Under the pieces are notes generated by a model, which saw nothing but the letters and a program-made list of their open reading frames with translations, had not been told where the DNA came from and ran no database searches. Source: Chara braunii (Eukaryota > Plantae > Charophyceae). From it: 64,000 nucleotides of DNA. The translations under genes were made by a program, and so were the position numbers. Location of the stretch: NCBI GenBank assembly GCA_003427395.1, contig BFEA01000014.1, positions 1,407,446 through 1,471,445 of the forward strand, read 5' to 3'. Positions 2,593 to 51,739 of the stretch are shown in pieces (the first letter of the stretch is position 1; the number at the start of each line of letters is the position of its first letter).

Positions 2593-2595
<3 letters not shown>

Positions 2596-2749
2596 GTCTT
2601 ACATTCGTACACTCTTGTTGTGTTCCAGAATGCATTGCTAACACATGTTGTGTTGTGGTATGTTACTATGCTGTGCTCTCTCTCTCTTTCTCTCAACCAC
2701 CTGTTTAACTACCCCAATTATGTGATGTCAGGCTAAGTTCTGCAAATGA
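2593..2749 (+). repeat. ~157-bp direct repeat, left copy (partner 16497-16653), embedded in (CT)n
   Basis: CACGTCTTACAT...GAATGCATTGCTAACACATG...AACTACCCCAATTATGTGATGTCAGGCT...TGCAAATGA is present at both loci. Confidence 0.9.
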
Positions 2750-3979: not shown

Positions 3980-4505
3980 ATCAACAGAAAAATTCCCATG
4001 AGAAATGAGAGTTGAAAAAACATTCCATAAAAAAAAAATCCTTCATATTTATAACTTATCATTCCAATGTTTGTCCAATTCTAAAATTTTCAATTTAATT
4101 TGATAAGTTCCCGTCTACATATGAGCTTTCCCTTCCAACTACATCTATTTGTTCAAGATGGAATGAAAGTCTGGACGAGTTTATGAAATGTTTTAATTAG
4201 ACTTTCATTCTATTACAACAAATATCGTTTAATTTAGATTGGATTAACCTATTTATGACTGGAAATCCTTACTTAGAATGGCAGTCCAATGAAAATATTT
4301 CATGAACTCATCCAGACTTTCATTCCATTTTTAGCATGCAGTTCAAATAAGAAGGGATACCCCATTCTTGGAAGGAAAGTTTTCAAGTAAAACGAAAAAA
4401 AAATAAATTGGAATTACATTTTTTAAGATGGAATAAGAATTTGAAATTTAAAATGTAATTTTACTATAGAATGATTATTTAATTCTGGGAAATTTTTCTG
4501 TTGAT
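3980..4505. mobile_element. AT-rich MITE (~525 bp), copy 1, inserted in the 5' region of the rolling-circle element
   Basis: TIR ATCAACAGAAAAATTCCCA / TGGGAAATTTTTCTGTTGAT. Internal inverted repeat (GATGGAATGAAAGTCTGGA.. / ..TCCAGACTTTCATTCCAT). A second copy lies in opposite orientation at 29807-30331. Confidence 0.9.
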
Positions 4506-4622: not shown

Positions 4623-7600
4623 ATGATGCAACCCCGCAACTTTTTACGTTTTCGCATACGCCCTAGATTAACAGGGGGAGGCCGAAAACGTGCAAAGCCT
4701 GAGACAGCCGACGACCGGGACACACGATTAGTGAAATAGAGAGCTGCGGCTCGTCTACGTAAGCTTAACAAAACAGAAGAAGCTCGACGTATACGGCTTG
4801 CACGCAATGCTGCATGGCACAAGGAAGCCCGGCGAAAGAAAAAGGAGATGGGAAACACGATTCATGATTATTCCCTGCCTCTTCTGACGACTTGCACTGT
4901 TGATTCCTTCGCGTCCTCATGTATGCCTCATGAAACCGAAACATCCATTGGTGGGCATAAAAATCATTTGCAGAAAAAAGGGCTTGCACCCCAGGCTTGC
5001 AAACTGCATGAAACCGTCTCTTTAATGTTTGTTCCTGAGCCTATTGTCAGTGTAATGTCTGGCGAACCACAATCAGGCATCTTAGTTCACACCCGCGATG
5101 CACATAACCATAAAGAGACAGGTATGTTCGTCCAATCGCTGGCCTTTGCGTGTTTACAATCACCTGCTTTAGCCGAGCAACGGCCACGACCACATGCCAG
5201 ACTGAAACATCTTGCCCGCAGAAAACATAAAGTCAGAACATTTGTACCGACGTCGCAAGAGATTGCGCACGTCCAGTCTGATACATATTCTGATAGATCT
5301 GACATGTTTTCAGTGCCTTCGTCCCCGCCTTTGTGTCGGTCGCAAATTAACATCTCTGTTTGCGAAAAATCGTGCTCGCTGTCGAAGCCAAGACATAGCA
5401 GAGTGACTGTATGTTCATCAGGTGAGCCTGTCAAGCACACGCGCCTCAAAAAATTGGCGAGGGCGCACGGTACGAACACTGCTGGCCAGGAAATTTTTAT
5501 TTCGGCCATTACAAACGACCGAAAAAGTGAAATTGCGAACCGCCTTGTCGAAAAGCTTGGGCCAGCGGGGTTGGCGGAAGTGGTCTGTTGCGTTTATGAC
5601 TGTTTTGTGTTATGCACTGACGCGTGTACATATTCGCCGCTCGAAACAGACGTTATCATTAGAATGCATGAATGCCTCGAAAACCCGGATTCCTCTGTGC
5701 ATTATGATGTGCTGCGTTACTATGACTGCTCTGATTTGTGTCCGCTGTTCCAGAGCCTTATGTTGTCCCGTCGTGGGGTGAATGTGAAAAACGATGACAA
5801 GCTTACATTCAATATCTGCATGGAATGCAATGGCGCATTGTTTAACCCTCGTCGCCACATTCGTTTGTCGAAATTCGCAATTGCCAACCACGTTTTCATC
5901 GGGGAATTACCCGCACCGCTCCAGCAAGCTACATGGCCTAAACTTCTCATGACAAGTCTCACAAACATACTAGCACAAACCAGAGTCATGCGTGGGGGAA
6001 TCCATCGTTCGATCCGTTCGCATCTTTTGGTCTTTGATGCCATTCCCGGTCCCGTGGCCATGCTTTCGCCAAAATCATGGACTAAAGATGCTTTCTATCG
6101 TATCATCCTTGCTGGTCCTTTCACAGACGCACAACTTGCTCGTGTCAGGAAGCTTCACTCCATTAAACATTGCATTGTTCATGATCTCTTGACGTTCTAT
6201 AATTCTCACAATCAACTTTACGATGGCGTTCGCTTGAACTTGACAGCGCTTAATGACATGGCTAATTTAGGCGAAGAATATGTCCCCGGGCCTGATACAG
6301 TCATTGAGCAAATGGAAGACGATGTGACGACCACTGAGGGTATCGACAATGAACAAGCAGGTTTAAATGCCCCTGCCGAAACAAGCACTGAGACAATGTA
6401 CATTGAGAGATCGGTTGTGTTTTTGCATGCGACCGCTCCTCTCGATTCCATCACAGAGAATGTCGTTGTCGACTTGTCCAATGGCATGACCAATGACTGC
6501 CCTGTTTTCACGTTGTCCAAATTTGCTAACCTTTTTGACCCGGACCTGAAAGCTAAAATGTTTCCGCATCTTTTTCCGATGGGTGCGGCCATTTTTGTGA
6601 GGTTGGAAGACATGTGCGTGTTTCTACGCAGCAATGCGCAAAACATTACTGTTTGTTGGCCTCTGGACGTTTTGCACAGTACCCATACTATATCATGGCA
6701 AGTTTCGACCGTCTCTCGCTTAACCGGGGTTACATGATGTCCAACATTACATGCAAGAGTCGCCCACGTATCCACCGCCCTATATCCGAAATCACAGCTG
6801 GCATGTTAAAAGCGGGCCTGGAAAACACATGTCGACGGCAGGCTGGCCATGACGTTCCACCAACTGACCCGGGGGTTGCACAAATGATGCATCATGTTGA
6901 GTGTGCGTCCGCGTAGGTGTGGGGAAGCAACGTCGAGCGGCGCGCATGCAGGTAAGAAGCTTTCGCGACGTGCGACCGCTTTGGCTAACCGAGTCTTTTC
7001 ATTACACTCACCCCCAACATGGACACATCATATGCCCTCGCTGCGTATGTTGGATTGCTCAACGTGGCCGACTTTTGTGATGTCTTTGTGACCGACCCGA
7101 ATGTTGGCCTAGATGATCTCAAGCAAATGTCCATGGCCGACAATGTTGCCTCAGCTAGACTCTTCGATCGTCTACAACAAACCTTTTTCGACGACGTCAT
7201 CGGGTTTGATTCTCGAACCCATAAAAGCATGGCTAGGGGGGGGGGTGTTTGGCAATGTGAAAGCCTGCTTTGGCATGGTCGAGACGCAAGGCCGTGGGAC
7301 GTTGCAGCTCCATTGTCTTGTTTGGCTCGAGAACACGCCGCCCACAACATGGCATTTTGATAATCTCCGTAATTTTAATGCCAACTTCAGCGAGCTGGTT
7401 ACATGATACACTGATAGTATCATTTCTGCACGTGCAACCTCTCTTGCTGAGTCGCTTCCTTGCTCATGTTGTTTCCATGCGTTGCCGGCTTACGTCGCAC
7501 ATCCGATTCCGTCAACAGCTCATCGCGCGCCCCCCCCAAAAAAACACGGGGCACCTACAGTGGAACCTCCGTCCGCAAAATGCATGTTCTGCAACACCCT

Positions 7601-10600
7601 CTTTAGCTCGCACCATCTTTTGAGGCAACAGTTGGTCATGGCTTCGCCGCCCCTGGAGCATAATGATCTTCATGACATGAATGAACCGCAAGGAGTGTGG
7701 GCACGCATGGTGGACGACCGGTTCCACACACATCCAGCAAGTGAGAAGCTCTTGGCAATGCCTCCAGGTCTCCCTACACTTGGCTTGACATTGCCTGCCC
7801 TTATTTATCTAGTGCAAACTCACCATTGGACACACACAACATCCTGTCTTAAGTATTCAAGGGCCAAAAAAAATCATCAAGTTTGTCGTTACCTTTTCCC
7901 AAAGATCCATTGTGATCGTACAGTTCTCCGCGACATAGGCATTGAGATTGAACGTGGTCTTGGAGACGAGTACATCAACGCGTACAATGACATTTTGTTG
8001 TTGACGTTTAAATGTAATCACGACGTTCAACCATTGTTCGGCGGTGCAGAGGCAGCGGAGAGTGTTTTTTATTCTTCTAAGTACACCATGAAAGATCAAC
8101 ATACAGTTGACTGTGCAATTGCTTTACGCTTGGCAGCGTTTGATGCGCGGCGACAGCGCGAGCTAGCGGTAGAAAAGAATGACGCACTGTCTCCGGAAGC
8201 CAAAACCCGCCACTGACTATCATCGCAGCTTTTCAACATGACAAATAAACAAGAAACAGCAGGTCCACTGTGCGCACTGTATCTTCTTCGCTAGTCGTGT
8301 GCGTACCTGAGCTACACTTACGGAACCCTGCCGCTCTATCACATGTTGAAACAACTCCAAGACGCGGACGATACTTTGTGCTCGCTGGATACATACAATA
8401 AGACATACACCGTCACTTGTCCACTCGACGACTACATGTTCCGCCCGCTAAGCCTCTCGCACCTTTGCTCACTTGCGGAGGACAGTTTTTTTCTTGAAGG
8501 TCACCCTCTCCGTATGCAAAAGAGTCTGGCGCGCCATACACAGGCTGCGATCCCTGTCGTCCCGTACTCGATGTGAATTCCGCATCGTGAGGCATGCACA
8601 GACGACGCTGCCAAAATGCGACATGCGCAATTGACATTGCTGCTTTTCAAACCATTTCGTGTTGTTCATGATTTGTTACCTCCGCATAGCACTTGGCATG
8701 ACGAGTTTGTCGCGTTTTATGAAATTATGTCGGCTTTTATGTGCGATATATATTTGCATATGCAGGATTACCACATTGCTCGTGAGCGGGCCACATAAAT
8801 GAGAAACAATGCCTACGCCGATGACCATGCCAACGATGATAGCGATGGCTTAACCACATCGTCGAATGGCAGCTCATAGAATGATACATGTCATGTTTTC
8901 CCTCCCTCAGACGACGAACAACCAGATGATGCCACTTTATCAGAGAACGAAGAGCAGGGGCCTTCCATACCAATGATCGTTGACAATGGTCAACCACTTC
9001 GTCATGCCCTAGCATCGTCGCGACTCCTGCTTGACTTGTTAGCGTCTTTTACGTTAGAAATATACAAATCCCTAATGCATAAGACCCTTCCTTCGCTGGA
9101 ACAACTACAAAAGCATCTGCATCATGATATCAAAGCATGTCTCGCATGGGCAAAAACTCCGTCTGTCCTTCCACCACAGGTCACACGTATGGAGTCTGAA
9201 TGGTCTGATTTGCCCTGCCCTACGCGTGTTCGCTTGATTGTTGACGAGCTTGACCCGCATAAATGTCTTCATTCCACAGCCCCTCTCTCGCCTGCTGACA
9301 GATCTTCCACATCGGCCTATCCGACTGTTCATGATGTGTCAGTCCAATTTTCTTTGAACGAGAAGCAATATGTGGCGTTCTCTTTGCTTGCCCGCGCTTT
9401 GCTGAACACGTGGCTGTCCCGAACCGACGCCGCCGGCGCGAATACACCACCCTCGCTTGTGCAAATGATCGACATGATAAAACAACAACAATTGCTTATG
9501 TTCCTCACAGGCGAGGGTGGCACAGGGAAATCGCACGTAGTATCTGCAATTGAAACGTTTGTCACGAGGTGGTATCATCCAAGAAGTGTAATGAAAACTG
9601 CGATGACAGGCAAGGCAGCGGTGGCTATTTAAGATATCACTTTCCATAGTTGGATCGGTATGCATAACCTTGAAGCGCACCATCGTTTCGAGCGCCGGGA
9701 CGCAGAACAAAAAGGGATTCCTCGTTTCACACCCGACTTGGCGTTACTTATAATTAACGAGTTTAGCATAGCATGATGGATAAAGAGAAATTTGTGCGTT
9801 TAGACCACGCCCTCCACAATGCACGTAAAATTGACCTCCCGTTTGGTGGTTTGCATATGCTTCCCATGGGTGATCTTTTTCAACTTCCCCCAGTTAGGGG
9901 CACGCCTGTCTGGCATGAACCAACAACTGGCCAAGCTCACACATCGTCTGATCACGAAGTATTTCACTTTTGGCGTTTATTCGACACTGTCTGTTTCCGA
10001 GCCGACCCGGAATGGGGGCGGCATTGTAAAAACGCAAGAATGGGCATACGGACAGATCAATTTATTGACATTATAAATAGCCGTTTTATTGATGAAACGA
10101 CCGACGCTCCACGGTCTTCGTCCCAAAGGTGATCAGTTCCCTGTCTTTGTGACGCCTGACAACAATGCTCGGGTCCGCCTGTCGCACAAATACACATGCA
10201 CATTGTGTGATCACCTTCTGCCAGGCCACCATCCTGTTCGTGTCATGACTGACTTTGGCAAAGCATTGGACAAACGAAACAAACAAGATATCACACATAT
10301 CATGTCCCTGCCTGACAACAAGCTCAAACGTTTCGTTGCATTCCTCGATCTCGTTCCTGGGATGCCATTGTTTTTCACGCAGAACATTGACCTAGCTCGA
10401 ATGATCGCTAACGGAACTTTTGGTTTCCTTCATTCCCTTCAATTCCCTCCACAAACCGCCTTCTCCTTAGTTCGTGATAAAAATGTTGACATCTATGTTC
10501 TTGTGTCTTCTCAACCACCGGATGTTGCATTTGTCCGTGTTCCTCGTCATGCTTCGTTTGAGAAATTCCCGTCTTCGATTCGTAGCGATCTACCTGCCGA

Positions 10601-11324
10601 CATCTACCCTGTTTTTAGGTGAAGGCCACAGAAAGCTGAACGCATTTTTCTCCCAACTCCTTCGAATGTGCCAGAAAGAATGTGTAGCTTACGGGCGCTG
10701 CAGTTCCCGTTCGTGTCAGCGATTTCTTCTAAAGTTTACAAGATTCAAGGCGACACATCATCATCGTTGGTTGTTGCAGCTTGGATAGCATCTTCTGACA
10801 AAGGCAAACGTGTGCATAACGTTCCACAACAAGGTTACATCATTGTTTCGCGTGTTGTTCACAGGTCTGCGTTTTTCGTGCTTCAAAAATTTACGAAAGA
10901 GCACGCCGCGTTTTTTGTGCCCGACCAGTTGATGTTGCTTGAACATGCACGGCTCGAGCAACTTTCATTGAACACGCTTTCAGCGAACGATACGTGGGGC
11001 CCATCATTTCCTTTGCCTCTATCTTTGAACACTCCATGCACATCGCTCTCTGTGCCGCCCATTCCTGACTCTTTGCCACATGTGAGTCATTCGCGCATAC
11101 ATCGTCATCCAGTTCCGCCCTCCGCTGCTTTCCTGTCTACAGCTTCGTCCACCACCTGCCCTTCCCCATGTTCTTCTGCTTTGCTGCCTCTTTCAATTAT
11201 GCACAGGCCCTCGTCCCGGTCTGCGTTATCCTCTGTCCCAGCTTCTCTGCATGTTCCGTCTTCACATTCTTCGGTGTCTTTGCTCCCATGGGTTCCATCA
11301 CTTAACGTGATGTTTGTACCATGA
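4623..11324 (+). pseudogene. Helitron RepHel (N-terminal DUF6570-like region, HUH Y2 Rep, PIF1-family SF1B helicase), disrupted by stops and frameshifts
   Basis: Ordered motifs across ORF fragments. N-terminal region: CMEC...KFAIANHVFIGELP. Rep: KMFPHLFP(YG); motif 1 SLFITLTPN (~6990); motif 2 VETQGRGTLQLHCLVWL (~7280); motif 3 FKCNHDVQ...FYSSKYTMK (~8010-8090). Helicase: Walker A FLTGEGGTGKS (~9500); degenerate Walker B IINEFS (~9750); PFGGLHMLPMGDLFQLPPV; GMPLFFTQNI...ANGTFG; QFPFVSAISSKVYKIQG; YIIVSRV. The frame extends upstream of 4848 to ATG 4623 through a TAG at 4737. Confidence 0.93.
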
Positions 11325-11937
11325 CCTTCACGGTTCATTTTGGCTCGGTGATGTGACAATAGGCGATTACATGGACCTTGTCATGGAGACCTTCCCTTCC
11401 GTTTTGACTGCCAACTGTTTCGTGTATGCTCATGGTGTGGCGCGGCGTGATCTTGTCTTCGCTGATCGTAACATGGATGCTCATAGACATGGACGGCCTT
11501 ACGAAACATTTGACCACTTCTTCTTGCCAATGCACGTCCATGGTAACCATTGGACGCTTGGCTACATACATTTGTGTTCGCGGACAATCTTCTTCTATAA
11601 TAGCTTCGGCTCGTCCTCGTCCACTTTCTTCCAAAACATGTCCCATTGGCTTCAAAATCGCACTAATTTCTTGCATACTCTGGTTGACATGCCGCGAATG
11701 ACCATTACCGGCCCGCTGCAGCATAACTCCTACGATTGCGGCATGTTCGTGCTTATCATGCTTCGCCATCTTTTTCTCCCCCAACCGTTCTCACATCTGC
11801 TTGATTTTGACCATCATGACATGGATTTTTACCGTTCCTTTGTTTATGATGAACTTACTACGAAAGTCCTGAAAGCCTTGATGCCTCATCCTCGCTCCAC
11901 TTTCCCAGTCCCTCCGGCTTACTCTTGTCGTTCGTAG
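11314..11937 (+). pseudogene. Ulp1/SENP-like (peptidase C48, clan CE) cysteine protease domain; probably the frameshifted C-terminus of RepHel
   Basis: Motifs WLGDVTIGDYMDL, FFLPMHVHGNHWTL (catalytic His), FFYNS (Asn at the usual Asp) and PLQHNSYDCGMFVL (Gln, Cys). It overlaps the end of the Pro/Ser-rich tail of the helicase ORF in another frame. Confidence 0.88.
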
Positions 11938-12332
11938 CTCCTTTTATGCCTTCCTTTCTTCTCTGCTTTCCTCTTTGTACACTTCTAGCAACACCGAATT
12001 CAGTTGTCGTTTAGTACGTTCTTCGCCTGGATTGCTATTATCTCTTTCTTTCATCGTTTTATTCGCTGCGCAACAACATTGTTCTCCATCTTTTTAATCA
12101 TCTTCATACATTTCTGCTTTTCACATACCCCTTGTTGTCCTCTCTGCCAATGCTTGCTCGGTTCTCTTCTGTTCAGTCTGACATATGCTGCTGCCTTCGT
12201 TCACAATGTATGCTTGCAGTGCATTACTTTCATCTCGTTGCTTAGACAACATAACTATTCTGCCTGAGGCTTTGTTCAACATCTGCTATCCATTTTGCTT
12301 ACACTCTACTTTTCCATTCTTCTTTTCAGGAC

Positions 12333-13162
12333 ATGGCTTCTACAAGAGGCGATCCACGAAATTCTGCATCTGCTCCCTTGCCACCGCTCAAACGGAGCAG
12401 GCCCACACTTGTTGAGCAAGCGCGGATATCCAGGGACAAACATCCTAGGGGCCGACAAATCATTCACAACAAAACCCTTGAAATGGAAGAATTTTCAAAA
12501 ATCCCGAAAAACCTCCAGCCCAATACGACGTGGTCGAGAGAGGCCTCCTTCTGCACACCATGTGGCTATGGGCAGACGACAAGAGAGTCCTGGACATGAC
12601 GCTCGGGAACATGGGGGAAGAGGACGGTGTTGAAGACACGAATTGGACGCTCGCCCACACGTCCAGCGACGCTGACCTTCTGGTGCTGCTGCGAAGAGGC
12701 ACGGTTTACGATTACGCAGAAAACCTCACAAATCCGCCTATCAGAATGGTGGTCGCTTTCTCACACACGACTGAGCACAAGTATTTCAGCCAGCGGCTGA
12801 TCCCTGCGTTCAACACAAATGTCAAGTTCATGGATCCATGACCAACAATTGTACAGGAGCTGCCACCGGTAGCACCTGACGTTCCACATGCAGATGCTCA
12901 CGCACAACCAATTCCACCACCGCCAGTCTTGCTCCCGCATCAACTCACACCGCCACCTCAGCTTCCGATTCACAATGCTATGCAATATCCTCCTTCTGCT
13001 TCGCTTCCACAGACTTCTTCCCATGCAAATGATTCAGAAACGTCACTCATAGCTTCAACATTTTCTGCCACACTTTCGCAAGCTCCTGTTGATGCTCTTC
13101 CTCATGCCGCGTGTGATGCCATGTCCCAGCACCCAGACAACGACCCGACAGGTTCTGTTTAA
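12333..13162 (+). pseudogene. Helitron accessory ORF A, unknown function (paralogue of 13641-14450)
   Basis: ORFs 12333-12599, 12530-12841 and 12929-13162 join via a frameshift near 12520 and a TGA at 12839. Co-linear similarity with ORF B; Pro-rich tail. Confidence 0.75.
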
Positions 13163-13640
13163 CGAGCTATGCCTTCGCTTCTGCATACCATACGCACATT
13201 GTGAGCAAGTCATGGTCTGCTTCGGTCTCATCTGCATAGGGCCACCTGCTTGTTAATCAAATGCAAGTGCGAGCGTTTTGTAGTCAACAGCAGAATAGGG
13301 TTGTTACAGAGGGTTTCCCTCCTCGTTTCTAAAATATAGTTGATGTAGTGGTCTGCCTTCTTCTCCTCAACCCCATCATCGCCACCGCATGTGTATACCC
13401 TTTCGTTTCCGTTCCGTGAAATTCTCCGCTCGCTTTAGATAACTCGCCCGCATGAAATACGTGGTCAGTCTCCCTCTCATGATCTCTCTTTCTCTTTCTC
13501 TTCCATCATGTCTCTTTCAATTCTGTCATCATCTCTCTCGCTCTCTCTCTGATCACATCTTCAGTGAATGAAAGGGTTTAAGCATCAACTTGTTTCGGGC
13601 GACCATTGACGACACCTGTTCACCTCTGTGTTTCCAGATC

Positions 13641-14450
13641 ATGGCCTCAACAGTCTTGGTCGCTGCTGCAGGCGAAGGACGTGACCCTTTGCCACCTTTC
13701 AAACGTGACAGTGGACAAATGCAGCAATTCCCAAAAGACATGCAATGGAAACGCCCAAGGCGGCAACAAATTGTCCATAACAAGACAGTCGAAATGGAGA
13801 ATTTCATAAGGTCGAAAAAACCTACAGAGCAATGTCGGGTCATCGAAAGAGGATTGCTTGTGCACTCGATCTAGCGACACGCAAACGGGATACGTGTTAT
13901 CAACATGGCATTGGCAGACGTTGACCAACAAGCAGCAGTTCAAGACATTCACTGGACACTTACACACACATACGGCGACACACAGGCTGAGACATTGGTC
14001 TTACTCAGGACAAGCACAATATATGACTACAAAGACAATTTTGAGATACTGCCTGTCGGAACACTTCTCACGTTCACTGCAACAACGGGTCACAAATACT
14101 ACAGCAGACGGAACATTCCATCATTCAACACAAACATCAGATTCATGGAGCTGCAGCCTGCAGTTGTCGCACGACCGCCAGAACTGGATGTGTTTGATGC
14201 ACCGCCAGATGTTGGTGATGACGAGGATGACGACGATGATGCTGACTATGATGATGACGAGGAGGAAGACACGGAGGACGGCGATGGGGAGGTGTTTGAT
14301 GCACCGCCAGTTGACATGGATGCGCCACTGCTTCCCCACGAAATTTTGGAGACCAGCGATCAACCGCCCGCATCTTCTGACCAGACAGACACATCTCCAC
14401 CACCATGTTCAGACCACGTTACTGGCTACTACGTTGGCAGATCAACATAA
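13641..14450 (+). pseudogene. Helitron accessory ORF B, unknown function, with acidic tail
   Basis: Single frame from ATG 13641 to 14450 with one TAG at 13872, where ORF A has Trp. Shares blocks PLPPxKR, QIxHNKTxEMExF, ERGLLxH, WTLxHT, LVLLR, YDY, HKY and IPxFNTNxxFM with ORF A. D/E-rich C-terminal tract. Confidence 0.8.
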
Positions 14451-14671
14451 AATGTCCTCCCTTCACTTAGTTGGCTATCCTTTACTACGTGCGCATGCTG
14501 TTGCCCTCATCCATGCACAACACGGTTGGGTGGTCGAATCACTTCAGATGACACTTTTTTTTTTTTTTTTTTGACAGCTTTTCTCTTTTGTTCTTCGATG
14601 TTGTGTGCATCTGCCACATAGACGGGTGAACAGTTGAGCACTCTTACTTCATTGCCCTTACAATTTTGTTT

Positions 14672-16020
14672 GGTTTCCTGTTCGAGTTTTGTTTGGTCGT
14701 CTCCTCCGTCAGTCTACGCACAGCCACGGCATATCAGGCCACTGTACAATACTTGCATGTCACCTGTACCCACAACATATCAGACATGCTCTGCTCTGCC
14801 CTTCTTTTTTGCAGTTGACTGGCCACAAAACGCTCTAATTTTGTTTGCCTGCCCTTTGCCTCTCTTTTTTGTAGTTGACTGAGGTTTTTCTGTGGCTTGT
14901 TTTTGTCCATACTCAGCATTCTAGTTTCTAGCAGATGCTATATCTTAGACCGCAATTGGGTCAACGCACCGACACTCCTTGTACAACTGGCTTCGCCGCA
15001 AGCATGCTTCGGTTCATTGGGCATGGAAGCCAAAGTGGTTGGCCCTGTAGAGTGAAGCATAGTCATGTCAGCACGTAAGAGGGGGGAGGGGTGTGGTTTC
15101 ATGTTCGAGTTTTGTTTCGTCATCTCCTCCTTCAGTCTACGCACAGCCACGGCATATCAGGCCACTGTACAATACTTGCATGTCACCTGTACCCACAACA
15201 TATCAGACATGCTCTGCTTTGCCCTTCTTTTTTGCAGTTGACTGCCCACAAAACGTTCTAATTTCGTTTGTCTGTGCTTTGCCTCTCTTTTCTGCAGTTG
15301 ACTGAGGTTTTTCTGTGGCTTGTTTTTGTCCATACTCAACATTCTAGTTTCTAGCAGATGCTACGTCTTAGACCGCAATTGGGCCAACGCACCGACACTC
15401 CTCGTACGACTGGCTTCGCTGAAAGCATGCTTCGGTTCACTGGGCATGGAAGCCAAAGTGGTTTGCCCTGCAAAGTGGAGCATAGTCATGTAGTTTCCTC
15501 TTCGAGTTTTGTTTCGTCGTCTCCTCCGTCACTCTACGCACAGCCACGGCACATCAGGCCACTGTGCAATACTTGCATGTCACCTGTACGCACAACATAT
15601 CAGACATGCTCTGCTTTGCCCTTCTTTTTTGCAGTTGACTGCCCACTTTCTAGCAAATGCTACATCTTAGACCGCAATTGGGTCAACGCACCAACGCTCC
15701 TCGTATGACTGGCTTGGCTGCAAGCATGCAGGGGGGGGAGGGGTGTGGTTTCCTCTTCGAGTTTTGTTTCGTCGTCTCCTCCGAGTCCGCCAGTCTACGC
15801 ACAACCACATGTCACCTGTACGCACAACATATCAGACATGCTCTGCTTTGCCCTTCTTTTTTGCAGTTGACTGTCCACTTTCTAGCAAATGCTACATCTT
15901 AGACCGCAATTGGGTCAACGCACCAACACTCCTCGTACGACTGGCTTCGCTGCAAGCATGCTTCGGTTCATTGGGCATGGAAGCCAAAGTGGTTTGCCCT
16001 GCAAAGTGGAGCATAGTCAT
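14672..16020 (+). repeat. Tandem array of ~423-bp units (2 near-complete and 2 internally deleted copies)
   Basis: Units start at ~14672, 15095, 15492 and 15747 (TTCGAGTTTTGTTT...CACAACATATCAGACATGCTCTGC...CTTAGACCGCAATTGGG). Near-identical spurious ORFs are offset by 423 bp (14734 vs 15157). Confidence 0.95.
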
Positions 16021-16334
16021 ATCTTGTATCTCCGTGTTCACGAATTTGGCTTTCGTTTGCCTCTGCTTTGTCTTTCACTTGTTGCAGTTCACCGAGGTTT
16101 TCCTAGACATTTGGTTTCAATTTTTGTGTTTTACATGTACCTTGTTTCTATCTATAGTCAACAGTCTAGATTCTTGAACATGCTACGTCTCACACCGATG
16201 TGTTTTGATTCTCTTTGTTAAATGGTACATGACTACTATGCAAAATGATGGTTAGAGAAAGACAAGCCTCTCTACATATATACACAACGCTTCAGTAGAC
16301 ATCAAAGTTTTCTGCCTTTTCAACAAGTCCACAA

Positions 16335-16496: not shown

Positions 16497-16502
<6 letters not shown>

Positions 16503-16653
16503 TTACATCCACACACTCTTGTTGTGTTCCGGAATGCATTGCTAACACATGATGTGTTGTGGTAGGTCACTATGCGGTGCTCTCTCTCTTTTTCTCTCAA
16601 CCACCTGGTCAACTACCCCAATTATGTGATGTCAGGCTGGCATCTGCAAATGA
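16497..16653 (+). repeat. ~157-bp direct repeat, right copy, preceded by (CT)n/(CA)n
   Basis: Matches 2593-2749; a partial third copy lies at ~16942-16975. Confidence 0.9.
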
Positions 16654-16723: not shown

Positions 16724-18366
16724 CTCCACTGTGATTGGGGGTAAAATTACATGCAAGCCTGAGTGCTGATTACAATTGATTTCCATTTCGATTCTATTTT
16801 CAGTATTTCTGTGGTTTCTCTGTGTATTATTATCATCCGATCTGTTGTGGACTGCTCTCTCCAAACGTCGCTTGCCATTGCACATATGTATAATGTGTGG
16901 GATCGTGTACATGCCATGTTGGATCTCGTTTCAATCTCTCTCAGAATGCATTGCTAACACATGTTGTGTTGTGGGAGTATAATCGCAAATTATATGTGGG
17001 TCAATTTCAAATTGTACGAGACTCCCCGGTCACACAACACATCCGTATACATGCAAAACAGAAAGGACACAGTCTCGACCTGCTCAGACCGGTAGGCCAA
17101 GTGATCGCGAGTGCGGTTGGAGGGGGGCATACCAACGGTCACGAATAGCGGTCGGCGAGCCGTTTTCATGGACAGTGCCCGGTTTTCCATTTCAGGCGAT
17201 ATCGAGCGAAGGTGCAATTTTCGGAAGGCCAGGCCGAAGTGGGTTTCAAGGTGTGCACAGCAGGCAGTCGAGGTCTTCGTATTCGTAAAACGAAAAAAAA
17301 AACACTAGAAGCAGTGAGTTCCCTCAGCACCCGAATATGAACGTGTTTGTGGAGATGTGCGGTTGAGGAAACTCAACGTGGTTTCCTGCACATCTCAACA
17401 AACACGTCCAGATTCGGGCACCGAGGAAACTCAACGCTGCCAGTGTATCATTCAGCCATCGGCCCCGCCACATGGGCAGGGGTGATCTTGTTTTTTTTTC
17501 CTTTTTTTTTTGGTCTAAATCTTGGTTATTCGAGCAACAACGGAACAAATTTTGGGGAGGGTGTGAACTACCCCCTTCCCCCGAACACAACGCACCCGCA
17601 TTTGGCTATGTGTTGTATTCAGGGGATGACAGTAGGGAAGGCCGACGATTGACTGGCCCACCAAACGGACAACTCTTCTTTTTTTGAGAAAACTACGGCG
17701 CAGTCAGGGTTTGAGTTTGAAATTGCACTTGAGGCAAAAGGGCCGGTAATGGTGAATGTATGTAACCAACCATTCGGGACAGGTGCGGTCACATGGGCAT
17801 GTGTTGTGTTCGCAGGATTGCCTGAAGTGCAATTTCAAACTGTTTTCGTGACTGCGCCGAAGTTACCTCTTTTTTTTTTCTTTCCAGAAAAAAGCCAAGT
17901 GTAATATGGCTGTGTGGCAACCATTTCGGGCGATATCGCACGAGGGTGCAATTTTCGGAAGGTCGGGCCAAAGTGGGTTTGGAGGTGTGCACAGCAGAAT
18001 GCTGGCAGCAGTCAAAAAACGAAAACATGCTAAGTGGAGCGTGGCGACGTCCTGAGATTGGGCCCGTTTCAAGAGTGGTGTGCCCAGGCCCGTTCACAAT
18101 CTTTTTCACGCCGGCCGGTCTCGCTCCCGAGTGGCTGCGCTTCCGCGCTTGCACGACACAGTAGATGGATTTTTTTGTTTTCTTCTTCTTACATACAATG
18201 TACATGGGCCTCGCTGCACGACTCTCCAAATGTGCAAGATGAGACTGAGGGTCTCGCTCCATTACACTAGACTCACGAAAAAAAATTGTGAGGATTTCTA
18301 GAGTTGTCAGAGGTCTAGAACTCTTGAAAAAAGCACTACACTTACTCCAGACTCAAGAGCTATAGA

Positions 18367-18488
18367 GGGCCTCGCTGCACTACTCTCGAAATGTGCAAAA
18401 CGAGAGTGAATCTTCCGCTAGAATATGGAAAGATACACCGCCATGAGCTTTGTCTGTTGTGCATGTCGAGAGTAGTGCAGCGAAGCCC
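18367..18488. mobile_element. ~122-bp Tourist-like MITE (TIR GGGCCTCGCTGCACTACT, 3-bp TSD AGA)
   Basis: TIR pair with AGA on both sides. Family members at 18740-18861, 45257-45382, 47990-48114 and 49063-49184. Confidence 0.9.
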
Positions 18489-18739
18489 AGAAGCACACAG
18501 GAATTTCTCAGCGCAACATGGCAGCCCTTCTACAACGCTAGATGATGGCGCTAGCTCCTTCTGACGGTCGGGGCAGGAGACACACTTGCAAAAAAAGAGG
18601 TCCGAGCGGGGGTAGGAGGGAGGACGCTAGAAAACCTGAGTGTTGCAGGTTGTGAACTCTATACAAATAGAGAGTGCGCTTCGAGAGCGCTTTTTGACAG
18701 CTCTCAAAGGGATTTGTCATAAGTTCCAGTCTAAAGTAA

Positions 18740-18861
18740 GGACCTCGCTGCACTACTCTTGAAATGTGCAAAACGAGAGTGAATCTTTGCTAGAAACATG
18801 GCGAGATACGGCCGCATGATTTTTGTCGTTTGTGCATGTCCAAAGTAGTGCAGCGATGCCC
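18740..18861. mobile_element. ~122-bp Tourist-like MITE copy
   Basis: Same TIR and internal sequence as 18367-18488. Both copies appear nested in a larger related element (~18249-18878). Confidence 0.85.
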
Positions 18862-19294
18862 TGAGTGGAGCGAGGCCCATAATCCACCACTAAGCCACCG
18901 CTATAACATAGATAGATACATTGTCATCTTGTTTGTCTTTTGTTTGGCAGGTTGTTTTCTTCGTCAACGATTTTGGGCAATAAGGTAAGATGGGGGGAAA
19001 ATTTTTGAAAGGTCATTTGAGACCACCTCTGCAGGTGGTCTCAAAAAGAGTCCTCCCTCGGCCCACAGCCGTTGACCGAAGGGTCACCATTTTAGGCATT
19101 TGGGTAGCAGACCTCTTCAATGTGACCCGAAAAATGCCTCAAATTTTGGGATTTGAGGTCATTAGGTCCCTGTGTGAGTATGCCCTCAAGTGCGCGGCAC
19201 TAAAGCCGCGCTACACTCGCCAACCGGCAGGCGAAACAAGAAAAAGAGACGACCTCCTTGCACTTTCAGACTTACTTTCTTCTGTTCATCTGAT

Positions 19295-27317: not shown

Positions 27318-28005
27318 TTAATAGATGAGTTGTCATGTGATCTCGGTAAATTGTCATGTAACTGATTGTTGTTATTTAATATTGGATTGATGCAAAGTAA
27401 TACTGTTGCATGGTTAATAATTTGACTGAGACTTTGATATTATATCTACCCTCCTCCGGTGTTCTGGAGTGCATCTTTGCCATGAGACCTATTGTTTGGT
27501 TGGTGGTAGAAGCAAGAGAGTGCTCAAGATGGAAAATGCAGAAGATGTCTAAAATCTTTAACGAAGAGTTTAAAATTGCGAATCAAGAAGGCGATCTCGT
27601 GAATTAAGAAGGCTATTAAGTTCGTGAGTGAAGATGACGCTCAAGATGTTGGATCAAGATGACAGGGCCTCATCCCGCATAGAGTGCTAAAGGATGTTTC
27701 GAATGAGTTTCCCCTGCCTGCACTTCAAGCACTTTAGTGGGATTTCTGATAAATATTGCGATGCAACCAGCTGAGCAGACAAAACATTTGGAGGGGTGGA
27801 ATAACAGGAACGGGTAGGATTGACTGAACTCGCGGATTGTTCAAGGTAAGGAAGACTTGTTAAAGATTAGTTGGCAAAGGGGTGGATTAATTGGGATTAT
27901 GGCTGGGCAGAATAGTCTTGGATAAGCAGTAGTCGAGGTCAGCCAAATGAAAAGTAAATTGGAGTGCGTCCATATGGGAGTAGGCCGACGAAAAAGTGAT
28001 TGTTC

Positions 28006-28054
<49 letters not shown>

Positions 28055-29806
28055 GAATGTTGATCCACGAAACTCTTGAGTAAGTTTGTTATGACCATAG
28101 GTTGTGTGCGTAGATCTAGGACAGGTGGATGATTCTAAGGTATGCCACATCAACGTTAGCACGAAAACCTAGCCTAAGACGTGCAGTAGGTGTGGCAGCT
28201 TCGACTGAGAGAACAACGCTAAATAAACAGAGTATAACACTGAAAGTAGTAGCATGTTTTATTTGCTAATTAGATAGACGCTAGACCCGGTTTCCAACAT
28301 AGTCGAAAAAAATGTTTGATTTTATGAGGGACGCTGAACCCGCTTTCTAGCACGTGACACTCCCCACGAATAGATGGTGTCATCATACCTTGTCGGCCTC
28401 TACCATCGAGGGATTTTACCACCTAGGTGGCAGAGAATGCAGTCATGAATGATATTAAAAAAAAAAAAAAATCACCCGATAAAATTTGTTTTTTTTTTTT
28501 TTTTTTTGGATGTGACTGTCATGAGTACCAGAAAATAAAAGACCATGGGACCCAGACTCGACAAAACTCGGTGTGCATTTAAATTCAGGTTCGGCAAAAA
28601 CATGATCGGAGGTAGTGGTAGTTTAACACAAGCCCAAGAGCCTAAACCAGTTCCAACTAGCATAACACTCCCTCCAACCACCTTACCACAAACTGTTGTC
28701 ATCCTTTTGTGGATATATAGACTGGGTGTTCAGATCTTTCATTTATCTACCTACCCCTTTCTCGAACTAAACCTAATGTTTATATTACACTTCTTAGTTT
28801 TATTCCTAATAAACTAACTACCTCTCTATCTTATACCTTAATACTGAGACCATATCACGGACTTTGATACTTTCCCTTCCACGGCTCTGAGTCGAGCACA
28901 ATAATATTTGGCTTACCTGCCAGTGGAACCTCATACGGTTCTCCAACAACATGATGCTCTACCCAACCCCACTTACCAACAAACATTTGCCCTTCTACTG
29001 CGAAGAATAGATCGAGCACCCAGGTTCTAACTATTGGCCAAGAAGCAAAGTACGACTAACCCCACCAACAAGCTTAAGGTTGGCCTAGAGTCACGGAGTC
29101 CAAGGTAGTCAAGCAACGATTCGGAGCAACCAAGGCATCCTCCCAGATCGGTGCTGAGAGGTTTCAATCATTCGAGGTGGTAGAGCAGGAGCCAGACCTT
29201 ACTACTGGTGAAACGATTTTGCAGTAGAGACAACAACAATCAGCTCAACCATCGGATCTAAAGACCAAGACCTCGGGGGGGAGGAGAATCACAGGCATCA
29301 CTAAGGCTGGGTCAACGAGCAAGCAATTGAAGCAGGCTAATCTTCGATGCCCCCCTGGGCTCCCAAAAGGGATTGGTTGGGAGGACCCATAGAGTATGGC
29401 CTTAATGACACCAATGGCTACGACCTAAACAATGACCTTCAAACGGAGAGGAAGGCACCTGGACCCTCAGCCCACTCTCGGTGGTAGGTCCAGCAGCGAT
29501 ATCACTTGGAACCGGAACCAAAGGGCTACTACCAGCTTCACTGAGACTCATACTTCTCCTCTCAACCTATGCAGGTGGAACACTCGCAACCAAGGTACCC
29601 ATCCGGCTCATACAACTGGTGGAATTTGAGTCCTCAAGCGTAGAACAGAGGTCTTCCCTCCCTGGATCTTCTCAGATGGGAGAGGAGAGGTGGCTCTAGC
29701 AGGAGGTGGATAAGAACCAATAATTTCAAGTGAGACTCGTGGAAAGACGATAATCAGCGGCAGAGGGGTGATGCTACAGGAACATGGAGATAAAGTAGTC
29801 AAAACC

Positions 29807-30331
29807 ATCAACAAAAAAAATTCTTATAATTAAATAATCATTCTATAGTAAAATTACATTCTAAATTTTAAATTTTCATTCCATCTTAAAAAATGTCATT
29901 CCAATTTAAAAAACATTCGTCTTACTTGAAAACTTTTCTTCCAAGAATGCGGTATCCTTTCTTATTTGAACTACATGCTAGAGATGGAATGAAAGTCTGG
30001 ATGAGTTTATGAAATATTTTAATCGGACTGTCATTCTAAGTAAGGATTTTCAGTTATAAATAGGCTAATCCAATCTAAATTAGAAGATATTTGTTGTAGT
30101 AGAATGAAAGTTTAATTAAAACATTTCATAAACTCATCCAGACTTTTATTCCATCTTGAACAAATAGATGTAGTTGGAAGGGAAAACTCATATTTAGACG
30201 GGAACTTATCAAATAAAACTGAAAATTTTATAATTGGACAAACATTGGAATGATAATTTATAAATATGAAGGATTTTTTTTTATGGATTGTTTTTTTAAC
30301 TTTCATTTCTCGTGGGAATTTTTTTGTTGAT
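29807..30331. mobile_element. AT-rich MITE copy 2 (inverted relative to 3980-4505)
   Basis: Full-length reverse-complement similarity to 3980-4505; ATCAACA...TGTTGAT termini. Confidence 0.9.
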
Positions 30332-45225: not shown

Positions 45226-45256
45226 CCGCCGTGTGATCCGTAGTGCGTGTGAGGAT

Positions 45257-45382
45257 GGGCCTCGCTGCACTACTCGCGACATGCACAAAAGACAAAAAAG
45301 ACTCGTGGCGGTGTATCTTTCCATATTCTAGCGGAAGATTCACTCTCGTTTTGCAAATTTCGAGAGTAGGGCAGCGAGGCCC
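45257..45382. mobile_element. ~125-bp Tourist-like MITE copy
   Basis: Reverse-orientation member of the GGGCCTCGCTGCACTACT family. Confidence 0.88.
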
Positions 45383-47989: not shown

Positions 47990-48114
47990 GGGCCTCGCGC
48001 CACAAATCACCACATGCACACAAGACAAAAAATTATGGCGGTGTATCTTTCCATGTTTTAACGGAAGATTCATTCTCATTTTGCACAATTGGTGAGAGCA
48101 GTGGAGGGAGGCCC
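47990..48114. mobile_element. ~125-bp Tourist-like MITE copy
   Basis: Same family; further partial copies at ~48153-48260. Confidence 0.8.
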
Positions 48115-48584
48115 TCCCTTAGTTGTGTGTGTGTTGTCTTTTTTTCTGGCTTTGGGCCTCGGTCCACTGCTTACCAATTGCGCAAAGTGAAAATGAATCT
48201 TCCGTTAAAATATGGAAAGATACACTGGCATAATGTGTGGGCCTCGCTCCACTGCACAGCACTCCAAATGTATCTGGCGCTCCCAATGGCCGACAACATG
48301 CTTCTGGACAAGATATGAGATTGATTGGAACTAAAAAAAAAAAAAATAATAATTAAAAAAAATAACAAAATAAAATGGAACTTAACATATCCAAGGTGTC
48401 CCACGACTCAGAATATCTGGCGCTCAACTTGTTTCTGGTGGGTTAAAAATGTTTGGCAAATTAGAATGTATCTGGATCATATACAGCACATGTACATTTC
48501 AAATTTCATGCAGTGGAGCCGAGGCCCTTTGTTAGACTCGACAGTCTTCCCCTGAACACAACACTCTGCAATCCCCCCCCCCCC

Positions 48585-49062: not shown

Positions 49063-49184
49063 GGGCCTTGCTCCGCTTCTGTTGAAATATGCAAAACGAG
49101 AGTGAATCTTCTGCTAGAACATGGTCAGATACACTGGCATGATTTTTGTCTTTTGTGCATGTCGGTAGTAGTGGAGCGAGGCCC
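49063..49184. mobile_element. ~122-bp Tourist-like MITE copy, TSD TAT
   Basis: GGGCC...GGCCC termini with TAT on both sides. Confidence 0.88.
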
Positions 49185-51739
49185 TATGGCTGTTAATTTG
49201 TACCGTCATCCCCCTTACTAGAATCAATTGTCATTATCGCAGTACCTAGGTGTGGGGGACAAATGTGTCTGGTCTATACCGATGGGGCCTATGGTATAGC
49301 TGTCTATACCTGGCGTCCCAAGTGCCCGTACGGGATGGCTCGCTCGACTAGACTCCACACCAAGGGCTGACTGGGCCCTGTGCTTAGGATTATAATGTGA
49401 TAACAGAATGCCGATCCATACCGCTCAATAGCATCAACAACACAATAGCACAACCATTGGAATCATCGACACACTGAATGAAAGGCACAAGGGCTGAGTG
49501 GGCGCTAAGCTTAGCCCTGGTGCCTACAGCTACGGTCTCATCCCGCTGCATAGAAGCGGCCAGGGAGTTGGGTGGCTGGGTGATGGTCCTTGTACTGAGG
49601 CAGGACTGGGAGAGGGAGGAGGGGGGGGGGGGGTGTTCCGCTGTGGAGAATTGTTACGAGGAAAAGGACAGTGGTGGTTTCATAAGGTAGACGCCATGGG
49701 AAAAAAAGGAGTGGTGTGGATGTGATGGAGGGAGGGAGGAGATGGGTGGGATGGGTGGATGGGTGGACGTGTGGAGGGTGGGGTGGATGGTTGGGTGGGT
49801 GGATGGATGGAGCGCTGAAGAGATGGGGTGGCAAAGGGATGGATGGGAGGATAGGTGGAGGGGTGGGATAGCAGAGTGGACGGAAGGATGGTTGGATGCA
49901 TGCATGCTTTGTGTGATGCATGTGTTATGTTTTTCGTTGCTGTCAACTTGCGACGATTATGTTGACGATCGGGACAGTTGTGAAGGCAATTTACGTCTTG
50001 ACAGCACTTTATTCACGTACCGCGAAGTAGTGCCAGCGAGACCTCTCTCCTGTGTGGTAACCTGTGTGATAATCGATGGGTTTAGGGTTATTTCATGTTC
50101 CACACTTTCTCCTGGATAGAGTCGGTCCATTTTGATTGCNGTGTGTGTGTGTGTGTGTGTGTGTCACATGAGTTTCGCATGAGTACGACACGTCTTACCC
50201 GTGTTGCTCCGACCAGACACGTCGGCACACTGTGGGGAAGATGCAAAGCGCGGGGGGCGATTTTTCAACGTGGCCGGGTAAAACCATTCGTGGTCCATTT
50301 GTGGTGTGGGTACTTATTTAAAGGGCCGTAAAGTCGAAAGCAGCCAAATATGCGAAAGCAGTAAGAGAAAGTGAGGGGAGTGGGTGGCGCCTCCTCTTTT
50401 TCAGACAGACCAGAACACACGCAATAACACCCCACAAACAAACGGAGGGAAGGGGGGAAGGAAAAGGACAGTGAGGCAAAGGGCAGGGAACCAACACCAT
50501 AGCATGACAAACCACAACATGGCACATGAACTTAAGAGGCACGAGAGGAGGAACAAACAGCGAGGCAGCACATAGGTTGAAACGCACTGGGGAGGCACAT
50601 GAACTTAGAGGCATGAGAGGAGGAACAAGCAGTGAGGCAGCACATAGGCTGAAACATATGGGGGAGGCGGGAGGGCATAAGTACAAGATTCGAAAAACAG
50701 CAAAGCGGCCAGAAGAATAGAAAACAGCAAAGGACAGGCTGGAGGGTAGAGGGGAGGAGGGTGGGCAAACAAACAGCACAAGGCAAGAAACAAAGACCCA
50801 AAAAAAAAAAAAAAAACTGATGATGATAGATTGTTTCGTCGGAGTTGCACCGACTCATTAGGAGGCTGAACCCTCGACAATCTGCGGATTCTCCGTATTT
50901 GATGGTTTGGGTCATGAACCCTTTGGCCCTTGTTGAAGCTAGACTGTCCCCAAGCGGAACATAGCAGTGGGCAGCAACGCTGTGGAGCACCAGGCAACAC
51001 AGTAGAGGCAACACGGCTGCACAACGCCGAAAATGACTGCAAGGAACGACATGGCGCACAGGACATGAAGCGCGGCAACCATGTAGTGAAGCACAAGGCA
51101 ACACAAGCAGGGCAGCCACACTGCAAGGGACGGCAGGACCAGCAGCTCGGCAACCGTGGAGCGGAGCACAAGGCCCCAGCACCAAGGCAACCAACCTACA
51201 GGGCACACAAGCAGCAAACACGGAAGGCACGGCCAGCCGATGAGCAGCACAGCGGCGAAGCAGTGAAGCGCAAGGCAACACCAACAACACAGCCAAACCA
51301 CGCAGTGAACACAGCAATTCGCAGAGAGCCACACGCGAAGCAAGCGGGACAGGCAGCAAGGCAGCGGCGGAGGGCGGACGAGGACGTCCACACATCCAAC
51401 ACTGAGCAAAGCAGCACATGACCTACTCACATCACGGTTGAACCCCGTAGACTGTTGGTTCCCACCACCCACTGAGTCAGGGAGTCACTCCGATGAACAT
51501 CCACCATCACCGACAGGAAATGCAGACATCCCGAACGAAGCAGCCCCCATAAGAGTGCAGTAGGCACTCCAAACGAGGAACCACCGACTGTTTGGCACTA
51601 CTTAAGGGTGCTCAGTTGGGCATACAAAAATAACATAGAAAAAATCAAGGGGAGGACATACAACAGAAGAAAGACTGACACATAGAAAAAAATCAAGGGG
51701 AGGACATACAACAGAAGAAAGACTGACAGACATAAAACT

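Follow-up and report, generated by a model that had tools for sequence, protein, structure and literature searches.

To our knowledge, no role has been demonstrated for the RPA-like genes of Helitrons, which tend to be regarded as remnants of gene capture. Helitron transposition involves one donor strand and circle intermediates (PMC5876387), and genes for RPA and Ssb-like OB proteins are among the cargo already described for Helitrons (PMC11417382, PMC4683698, PMC4067079). The plant Helitron RPA (PHRPA) and Helentron RPA70-like genes, which are sequence-recognisable RPA70 homologues with several OB domains (DBD-A and DBD-B in a mite Helentron), lie as separate OB genes beside the RepHel gene, either upstream or downstream, and are often broken (PMC4683698, PMC4067079). 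The RPA-only Mothra mother element shows that RPA can persist without RepHel (PMC4683698). Within the HLE2 group, the HELIANO survey reported Ssb-like_OB, HIN, DUF6570 and Peptidase_C48 as additional domains, all found by Pfam match; DUF6570 occurs almost only in HLE2 elements, and the Ulp1 domain (Peptidase_C48) is known Helitron cargo (PMC11417382). The Helitron2 element FoHeli of Fusarium has asymmetric terminal inverted repeats, joined ends and an extra ORF without known domain, and carries no RPA-like gene (PMC5148889).

The DNA analysed here (the window, 64,000 nucleotides of Chara braunii) carries two related genes, A and B, located 3' of a decayed RepHel gene and an Ulp1 domain, all on one strand. 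We read A/B as a decayed accessory gene of an HLE2-type lineage, encoding a single-OB protein that would be a putative coat of the displaced strand, and we assign this reading a probability of roughly 65%. The main features of the window are as follows.

2594..2745, no strand: left copy of a direct repeat of ~150 nt, 90% alike to the right copy, bracketing the element
4623..10991, + strand: decayed RepHel with DUF6570, HUH Rep and Pif1 helicase, with several stops and frameshifts
11314..11937, + strand: Ulp1/SENP-type protease domain, fused to the RepHel in the intact relative L008
12333..12841, + strand: core of gene A, with an N-terminal K/R/P-rich leader and a predicted OB domain, frameshifted at ~12494-12497
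12842..13162, + strand: Pro-rich in-frame stretch 3' of the TGA of A (22 Pro in 106 aa)
13641..14450, + strand: gene B, with a leader, a predicted OB domain (~13755-14150), an internal TAG and an acidic tail
14668..16023, no strand: decaying tandem repeats with a unit of ~420 nt, downstream of B
16498..16649, no strand: right copy of the ~150-nt direct repeat, bracketing the element on the other side

Pfam searches matched PIF1 and DUF6570 in the window and Helitron_like_N in two sister elements (L003 and L005); motif 2 of the window HUH Rep (~7272-7313) has Gln in place of the first His. DUF6570 places the element tentatively in an HLE2-type lineage (Helitron2-like, lacking an endonuclease). 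The element appears Helitron2-like because no endonuclease was matched in the complete RepHel ORF of the relative L008, in which the Ulp1 domain stands behind the helicase, at the position of the fused AP endonuclease of the Helentron. DUF6570 and an Ulp1 domain are likewise found in the HLE2 elements of the HELIANO survey, for which OB-type cargo has been reported (PMC11417382). The ~150-nt direct repeats are candidate brackets of the element, not established termini, and the tandem repeats downstream of B are probably its 3' non-coding region. The ends of the window copy were looked for and not found; an inverted repeat at 1770/17576 was rejected as an element end, since it is a dispersed repeat.

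Gene A starts with an ATG at 12333, and its conserved core is closed by a TGA at 12839-12841. The Pro-rich stretch that follows in frame has no Pfam match and is probably the former low-complexity tail of A. Gene B is interrupted by a single TAG (13872-13874), aligned opposite a Trp of A; its acidic tail contains 33 D/E in 98 aa, much of this acidity being supplied by a GAT/GAC-type repeat at 14216-14260. The first-pass annotation of this DNA had described A and B as diverged, co-linear paralogues sharing a series of motifs, and the comparison bears this out: the motifs are present, and the proteins share 45% of residues in a 156-aa alignment (E 7e-47, breaks read through as X), with a Smith-Waterman score of 357 against a maximum of 57 among 2000 shuffles. 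At the DNA level similarity is confined to short patches (~69-71%). Synonymous sites are saturated (pS 0.76) while pN is 0.34, indicating that the duplication is old and that the protein was under past selection. A genomic sister copy, detected in a DNA run, has one extra base at 12494 that yields an open frame; thus, the frameshift of A reflects decay of the window copy. Judging by these breaks in their sequence, both genes are dead in this copy. Both A (12839-12844) and the metagenome relative described below (L005:849-854) contain an in-frame TGA followed by C. Such a TGA is a leaky stop context in other systems; simple decay is the more likely explanation of these two stops. Separately, a DNA contig at a depth of 140 (single copy ~20) matches B in three conserved blocks only (13684-14151), implying a diverged multi-copy subfamily.

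Among 1.84 billion representatives, the only true homologues of the A/B domain were four Chara braunii hypothetical proteins, and no relative outside Chara was found except an element-borne one from a metagenome. Eight further copies were located on four Chara scaffolds (loci L001-L004). They fall into three types, X, Y and Z, whose usual layout is a Y-X pair ~1 kb apart, and several contain stops or frameshifts. The gene model CBR_g49252, at L004, is a chimera that joins unrelated repeats to Y and X. In close pairs dN/dS is 0.18-0.24, far from the value near 1 that would contradict selection, and the family, on these substitution patterns, is under past purifying selection, as had been proposed from its conserved blocks. 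The paralogue types X, Y, Z and A/B have diverged down to 20-35% identity and are still constrained. A and B group together in the tree with support of 96/96 without the metagenome row, the grouping being not resolved when that row is included; as sisters, they look like a local duplication. The conserved part spans ~130 aa, and the tails are unrelated among family members. In Chara, the tips of three X proteins are basic and rich in K/R, whereas acidic ends are limited to the tail of B and a short stretch in L005. Thus, the acidity of B is no family trait: the tail, which had been taken as an SSB-like signal, is specific to B, and the conserved acidic C-terminal tip of bacterial-type SSBs has no counterpart across the A/B family.

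The description of A and B as an unrecognised family also stood. Pfam searches with window pieces and 12 family rows gave the family no match, and the Ssb-like_OB, HIN and RPA models matched none of the 12 rows, with E values up to 1 considered. Neither members nor profile gave an RPA-related match in Pfam or among PDB sequences; of the PDB sequence profile searches, one returned weak Sushi-domain rows at E 0.5 or worse and another none, and PHROGs and NCBIfam gave single weak rows only. Word-based protein searches, limited by length and shared words, were uninformative, ESM Atlas feature searches returned nothing usable or HSF matches under 0.8, and OB patterns searched in metagenome and viral contigs gave nothing informative. 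One candidate member, P0005, was rejected as a repeat-rich chance match. Literature searches, of incomplete coverage, found no description of the family. The family appears new, Helitron RPA cargo as such being already known, and the analysis provides a probable fold and origin for the Chara hypothetical proteins CBR_g88578, g49758, g57093 and part of g49252.

Expression and possible splicing of the family involve three further features of the window.

12310..12335, + strand: pyrimidine tract and CAG resembling a splice acceptor, before the ATG of A
12559..12600, + strand: part of A to which polyA RNA reads from a diverged member of the family match, presumably in sense
~13620-13643, + strand: pyrimidine tract and CAG resembling a splice acceptor, before B

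Two polyA runs contain 14 and ~20 reads, all of one strand, that match ~40 nt of A with several changes. The variant keeps the frame, and two of its changes give B-like residues; a third run, guessed to be RNA, also has it in a contig at a depth of 77, and a DNA run contains most of its changes. This match, although short, points to a diverged member of the family that is transcribed from another place in the genome; the copy in the window itself has almost no RNA support. RNA depth at 14216-14260 was rejected as expression of B, since it comes from unrelated GAT-repeat transcripts. In A, B and the X genes of L001-L004 a CAG precedes the ATG by 2-5 nt, in most cases with a pyrimidine-rich tract in front of it; this layout suggests either an intron in the 5' UTR or alternative acceptors to which a leader exon is spliced.

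AlphaFold2 models were built from 12-row alignments for two intact relatives, one of X type and one of Y type, the fold of A and B being assigned by homology. The transfer is justified by the 37% identity between A and the X protein that was modelled (155 aa aligned, E 4e-28). The X-type model reached a pLDDT of 64 (core ~80-87) and the Y-type model 76, with a pTM of 0.72 and five models at 71-76; the two paralogues are 27% identical and have the same order of strands and helices. In three VIA-align searches nearly all of the top 50 rows were OB-fold proteins. The X-type model matched the Mcm10 internal domain (Z 7.2-7.3), and the Y-type model matched best the OB-B domain of Teb1 (Z 8.2, rmsd 2.6 over 88 residues), followed by OB domains of tRNA-synthetase, Mcm10 (internal domain, Z up to 7.8), PolC, CST, RPA32 and BRCA2. 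Foldseek gave an E of 5e-4 to an archaeal OB domain and then SSB, MCM and PriB rows. Since Z values of 7-8 are only moderately above the level that the search tool calls common, and the leading families are tied, the OB fold is well supported and the nearest family is not. The family thus very probably adopts an OB fold, as first proposed.

The likeness to Teb1 OB-A/B, the Mcm10 internal domain and the RPA32/Stn1 OB domains covers almost the entire domain (Z 6.4-8.2, rmsd 2.6-3.6) at an identity of only 7-16%, and the family lacks their zinc-finger or winged-helix partner domains. Of the 133 residues of the better model 88-99 can be aligned, which fits an insertion of two helices. In both models the second barrel strand is followed by two helices and the strand after it by a loop, as read from element order; the strand-strand-strand-helix-strand-strand pattern of the first-pass annotation found no support in them. 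The two-helix segment is thus predicted to be an insertion between barrel strands 2 and 3. The predicted order is an N-terminal strand and helix, strands 1-2, the two-helix insertion, strand 3 starting from an invariant Arg, a Pro-rich loop replacing the capping helix, strand 4, a His-Lys loop and strand 5, with variable, disordered tails around the domain. Strand 3 and the last loop, where OB folds usually contact nucleic acid, would then carry the conserved Arg, Tyr and His-Lys. A helix-strand segment matched by eye to domain A of RPA70 was dropped, its register being probably wrong. Each ORF has one OB domain, and the ORFs are separated by stops and ~1 kb; splicing may join them into a multi-OB protein.

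In the proposed mechanism, RepHel would nick one end and unwind one strand of the 10-15 kb element, exposing a long single strand; the OB protein would coat this displaced strand, keep off reannealing and nucleases, and help circle formation and strand transfer. It would probably act in trans and be dispensable for a given copy. The product is probably ssDNA-binding, and coating has been proposed as what the RPA-like genes do in other Helitrons (PMC4683698). Like those genes, the OB gene is separate and lies inside a Helitron next to RepHel (in the window, L003 and L005/L008). It differs from them in having no Pfam or PDB sequence match, one OB domain instead of several and, in Chara, two or three deeply diverged paralogues per locus. 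By sequence and domain number the family stands outside the Helitron RPA family, though it probably works alike. The existence of a second OB family, unrelated in sequence and under purifying selection alongside RepHels of only 33-50% identity, suggests recurrent recruitment of single-strand-binding helpers by rolling-circle transposons and an undercount of such helpers in surveys that rely on Pfam.

Against the single-strand coat stands the lack of any sequence link to RPA or SSB in profile searches, and OB folds also bind RNA, dsDNA (HIN) or protein. The element-encoded OB protein could therefore have another ligand, as an end binder (Pot1/Teb1-like), an RNA chaperone or a Mcm10/Stn1-like polymerase alpha-primase adaptor; in the adaptor variant, host polymerase alpha-primase would be recruited to copy the displaced strand. 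The best structural neighbours include the Teb1, Mcm10, Stn1/CST, PolC and tRNA-synthetase OB domains, the helical insertion could be a protein-contact surface, and the paralogue types have remained constrained despite their divergence. However, the scores single out no family and the Helitron precedent is general ssDNA coating (PMC4683698), and we consider another ligand possible but rather unlikely.

A similarly doubtful elaboration holds that the paralogues diverged long ago into separate jobs and are expressed, as genes of one orientation, by way of alternative splice acceptors, the whole being an independently acquired single-OB family with a helical insertion. One paralogue might, for example, coat the strand and another recruit host primase or recognise ends. 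If true, these elements would be small multi-gene replicons, not one-enzyme transposons.

It is improbable that the protein is instead an anti-silencing factor binding element DNA or host silencing proteins. VANC proteins play such a part in Mutator-like elements, and a fast-evolving, multi-paralogue, element-borne family with basic nuclear-signal-like tips would suit it, as would the neighbouring Ulp1 protease, which could also counter host silencing; yet Pfam searches of window pieces and the 12 rows revealed no likeness to a known anti-silencing family, and the OB fold together with the Helitron precedent offers a simpler account.

Carriage by a rolling-circle element, asserted for the window from the outset, recurs in other copies, and linkage to RepHel holds in both directions. 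At L003, which was fetched by its OB domain, a RepHel-Ulp1 sister (42-47% identical) lies ~1 kb downstream of X. In the reverse test, the Rep motif alone retrieved the metagenome contig L005, with an ORF of >2600 codons (DUF6570-Rep-Pif1-Ulp1) and a family gene directly upstream of it. This gene is 24-27% identical to A and B and was recognised by HMM (E 5e-9; score 33.5, the shuffles reaching at most 7.5) and hhalign (97.2%, E 5e-11). The family accompanies RepHels that are only 33-50% identical, either upstream or downstream. Strict linkage did not stand, since at three of the four Chara loci (L001, L002 and L004) no RepHel lies closer than 10 kb. L001 and the RepHel-bearing L003 have upstream non-coding DNA in common, and L004 contains a decayed Ulp1 (27900-28653) 8 kb upstream of its Y-X pair, ~22-24% identical to the RepHel-fused type; RepHel-less loci thus look like derivatives that lost RepHel, in the manner of the Mothra mother element (PMC4683698). 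At L003 the Ulp1 domain has its C-terminal half (18637-18939) in the opposite orientation to RepHel. A related RepHel fragment from a JGI metagenome (Ga0075015; L006:27-1631) is too short to show neighbours, and Rep patterns searched in viral and prokaryote contigs gave nothing informative.

The metagenome relative is compact and was recovered in a more complete form from another assembly of the same study.

L008:1-9725 and L012:1-75: compact relative, Logan SRR9320195-9; GCA_009712145.1 contig VFSW01018664.1

L008 contains a complete, intact RepHel-Ulp1 ORF of 2728 aa, and a head-to-tail junction defines a unit of ~9.8 kb with two genes only, the OB gene and RepHel-Ulp1. With 99.9% likeness among them, the assemblies are treated as a single observation. 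One sample shows the 3'-to-5' junction, from a circle or a tandem copy, and two others show other 5' flanks; the ends give an inverted match of 6/7. This match and the junction may correspond to the terminal inverted repeats and joined ends of FoHeli (PMC5148889). The compact element is near-intact and a candidate for recent activity. Its single OB gene makes an obligate A+B heteromer, earlier envisaged for what now look like local duplicates, unlikely. The OB gene has one in-frame TGA in 6/6 assemblies, the element being otherwise intact, which speaks against a need for it in cis; the gene may thus be dispensable. Reading TGA as Trp is unlikely, since the RepHel has 26 TGG and no TGA. The database protein P0010 has Trp at this site, but the standard-code translation of the gene differs, and the Trp is probably a gene-caller choice. 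With its intact RepHel-Ulp1, this two-gene relative offers a simple system for helper function. The window RepHel has, at ~4640-4680, an N-terminus with a ubiquitin-tail-like stretch ending LTGG, absent from the N-terminus of L008.

A passive Chara host gene family, captured once or domesticated and without a role in transposition, would fit the three RepHel-less loci, the transcribed copy and the annotation of copies as hypothetical proteins, but is most improbable given the stops or frameshifts in most copies, the DNA common to L001 and L003, the decayed Ulp1 of L004, the persistent company of such divergent RepHels and a sole non-Chara relative, among the 1.84 billion representatives, that is element-borne.

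Other repeats also occupy the region. An AT-rich element of ~525 nt with terminal inverted repeats, its copies ~90% identical, is inserted just upstream of RepHel.

3980-4505 and 29807-30331 of the window: copies of the ~525-nt inverted-repeat element
L001:16904-17431 and L004:32261-32783: further copies of the same element

Dispersed palindromic repeat families of 110-150 nt, found at 1688-1800, 17302-17446, 18366-18491, 45256-45382, 47990-48231 and 49063-49185, are probably miniature elements.
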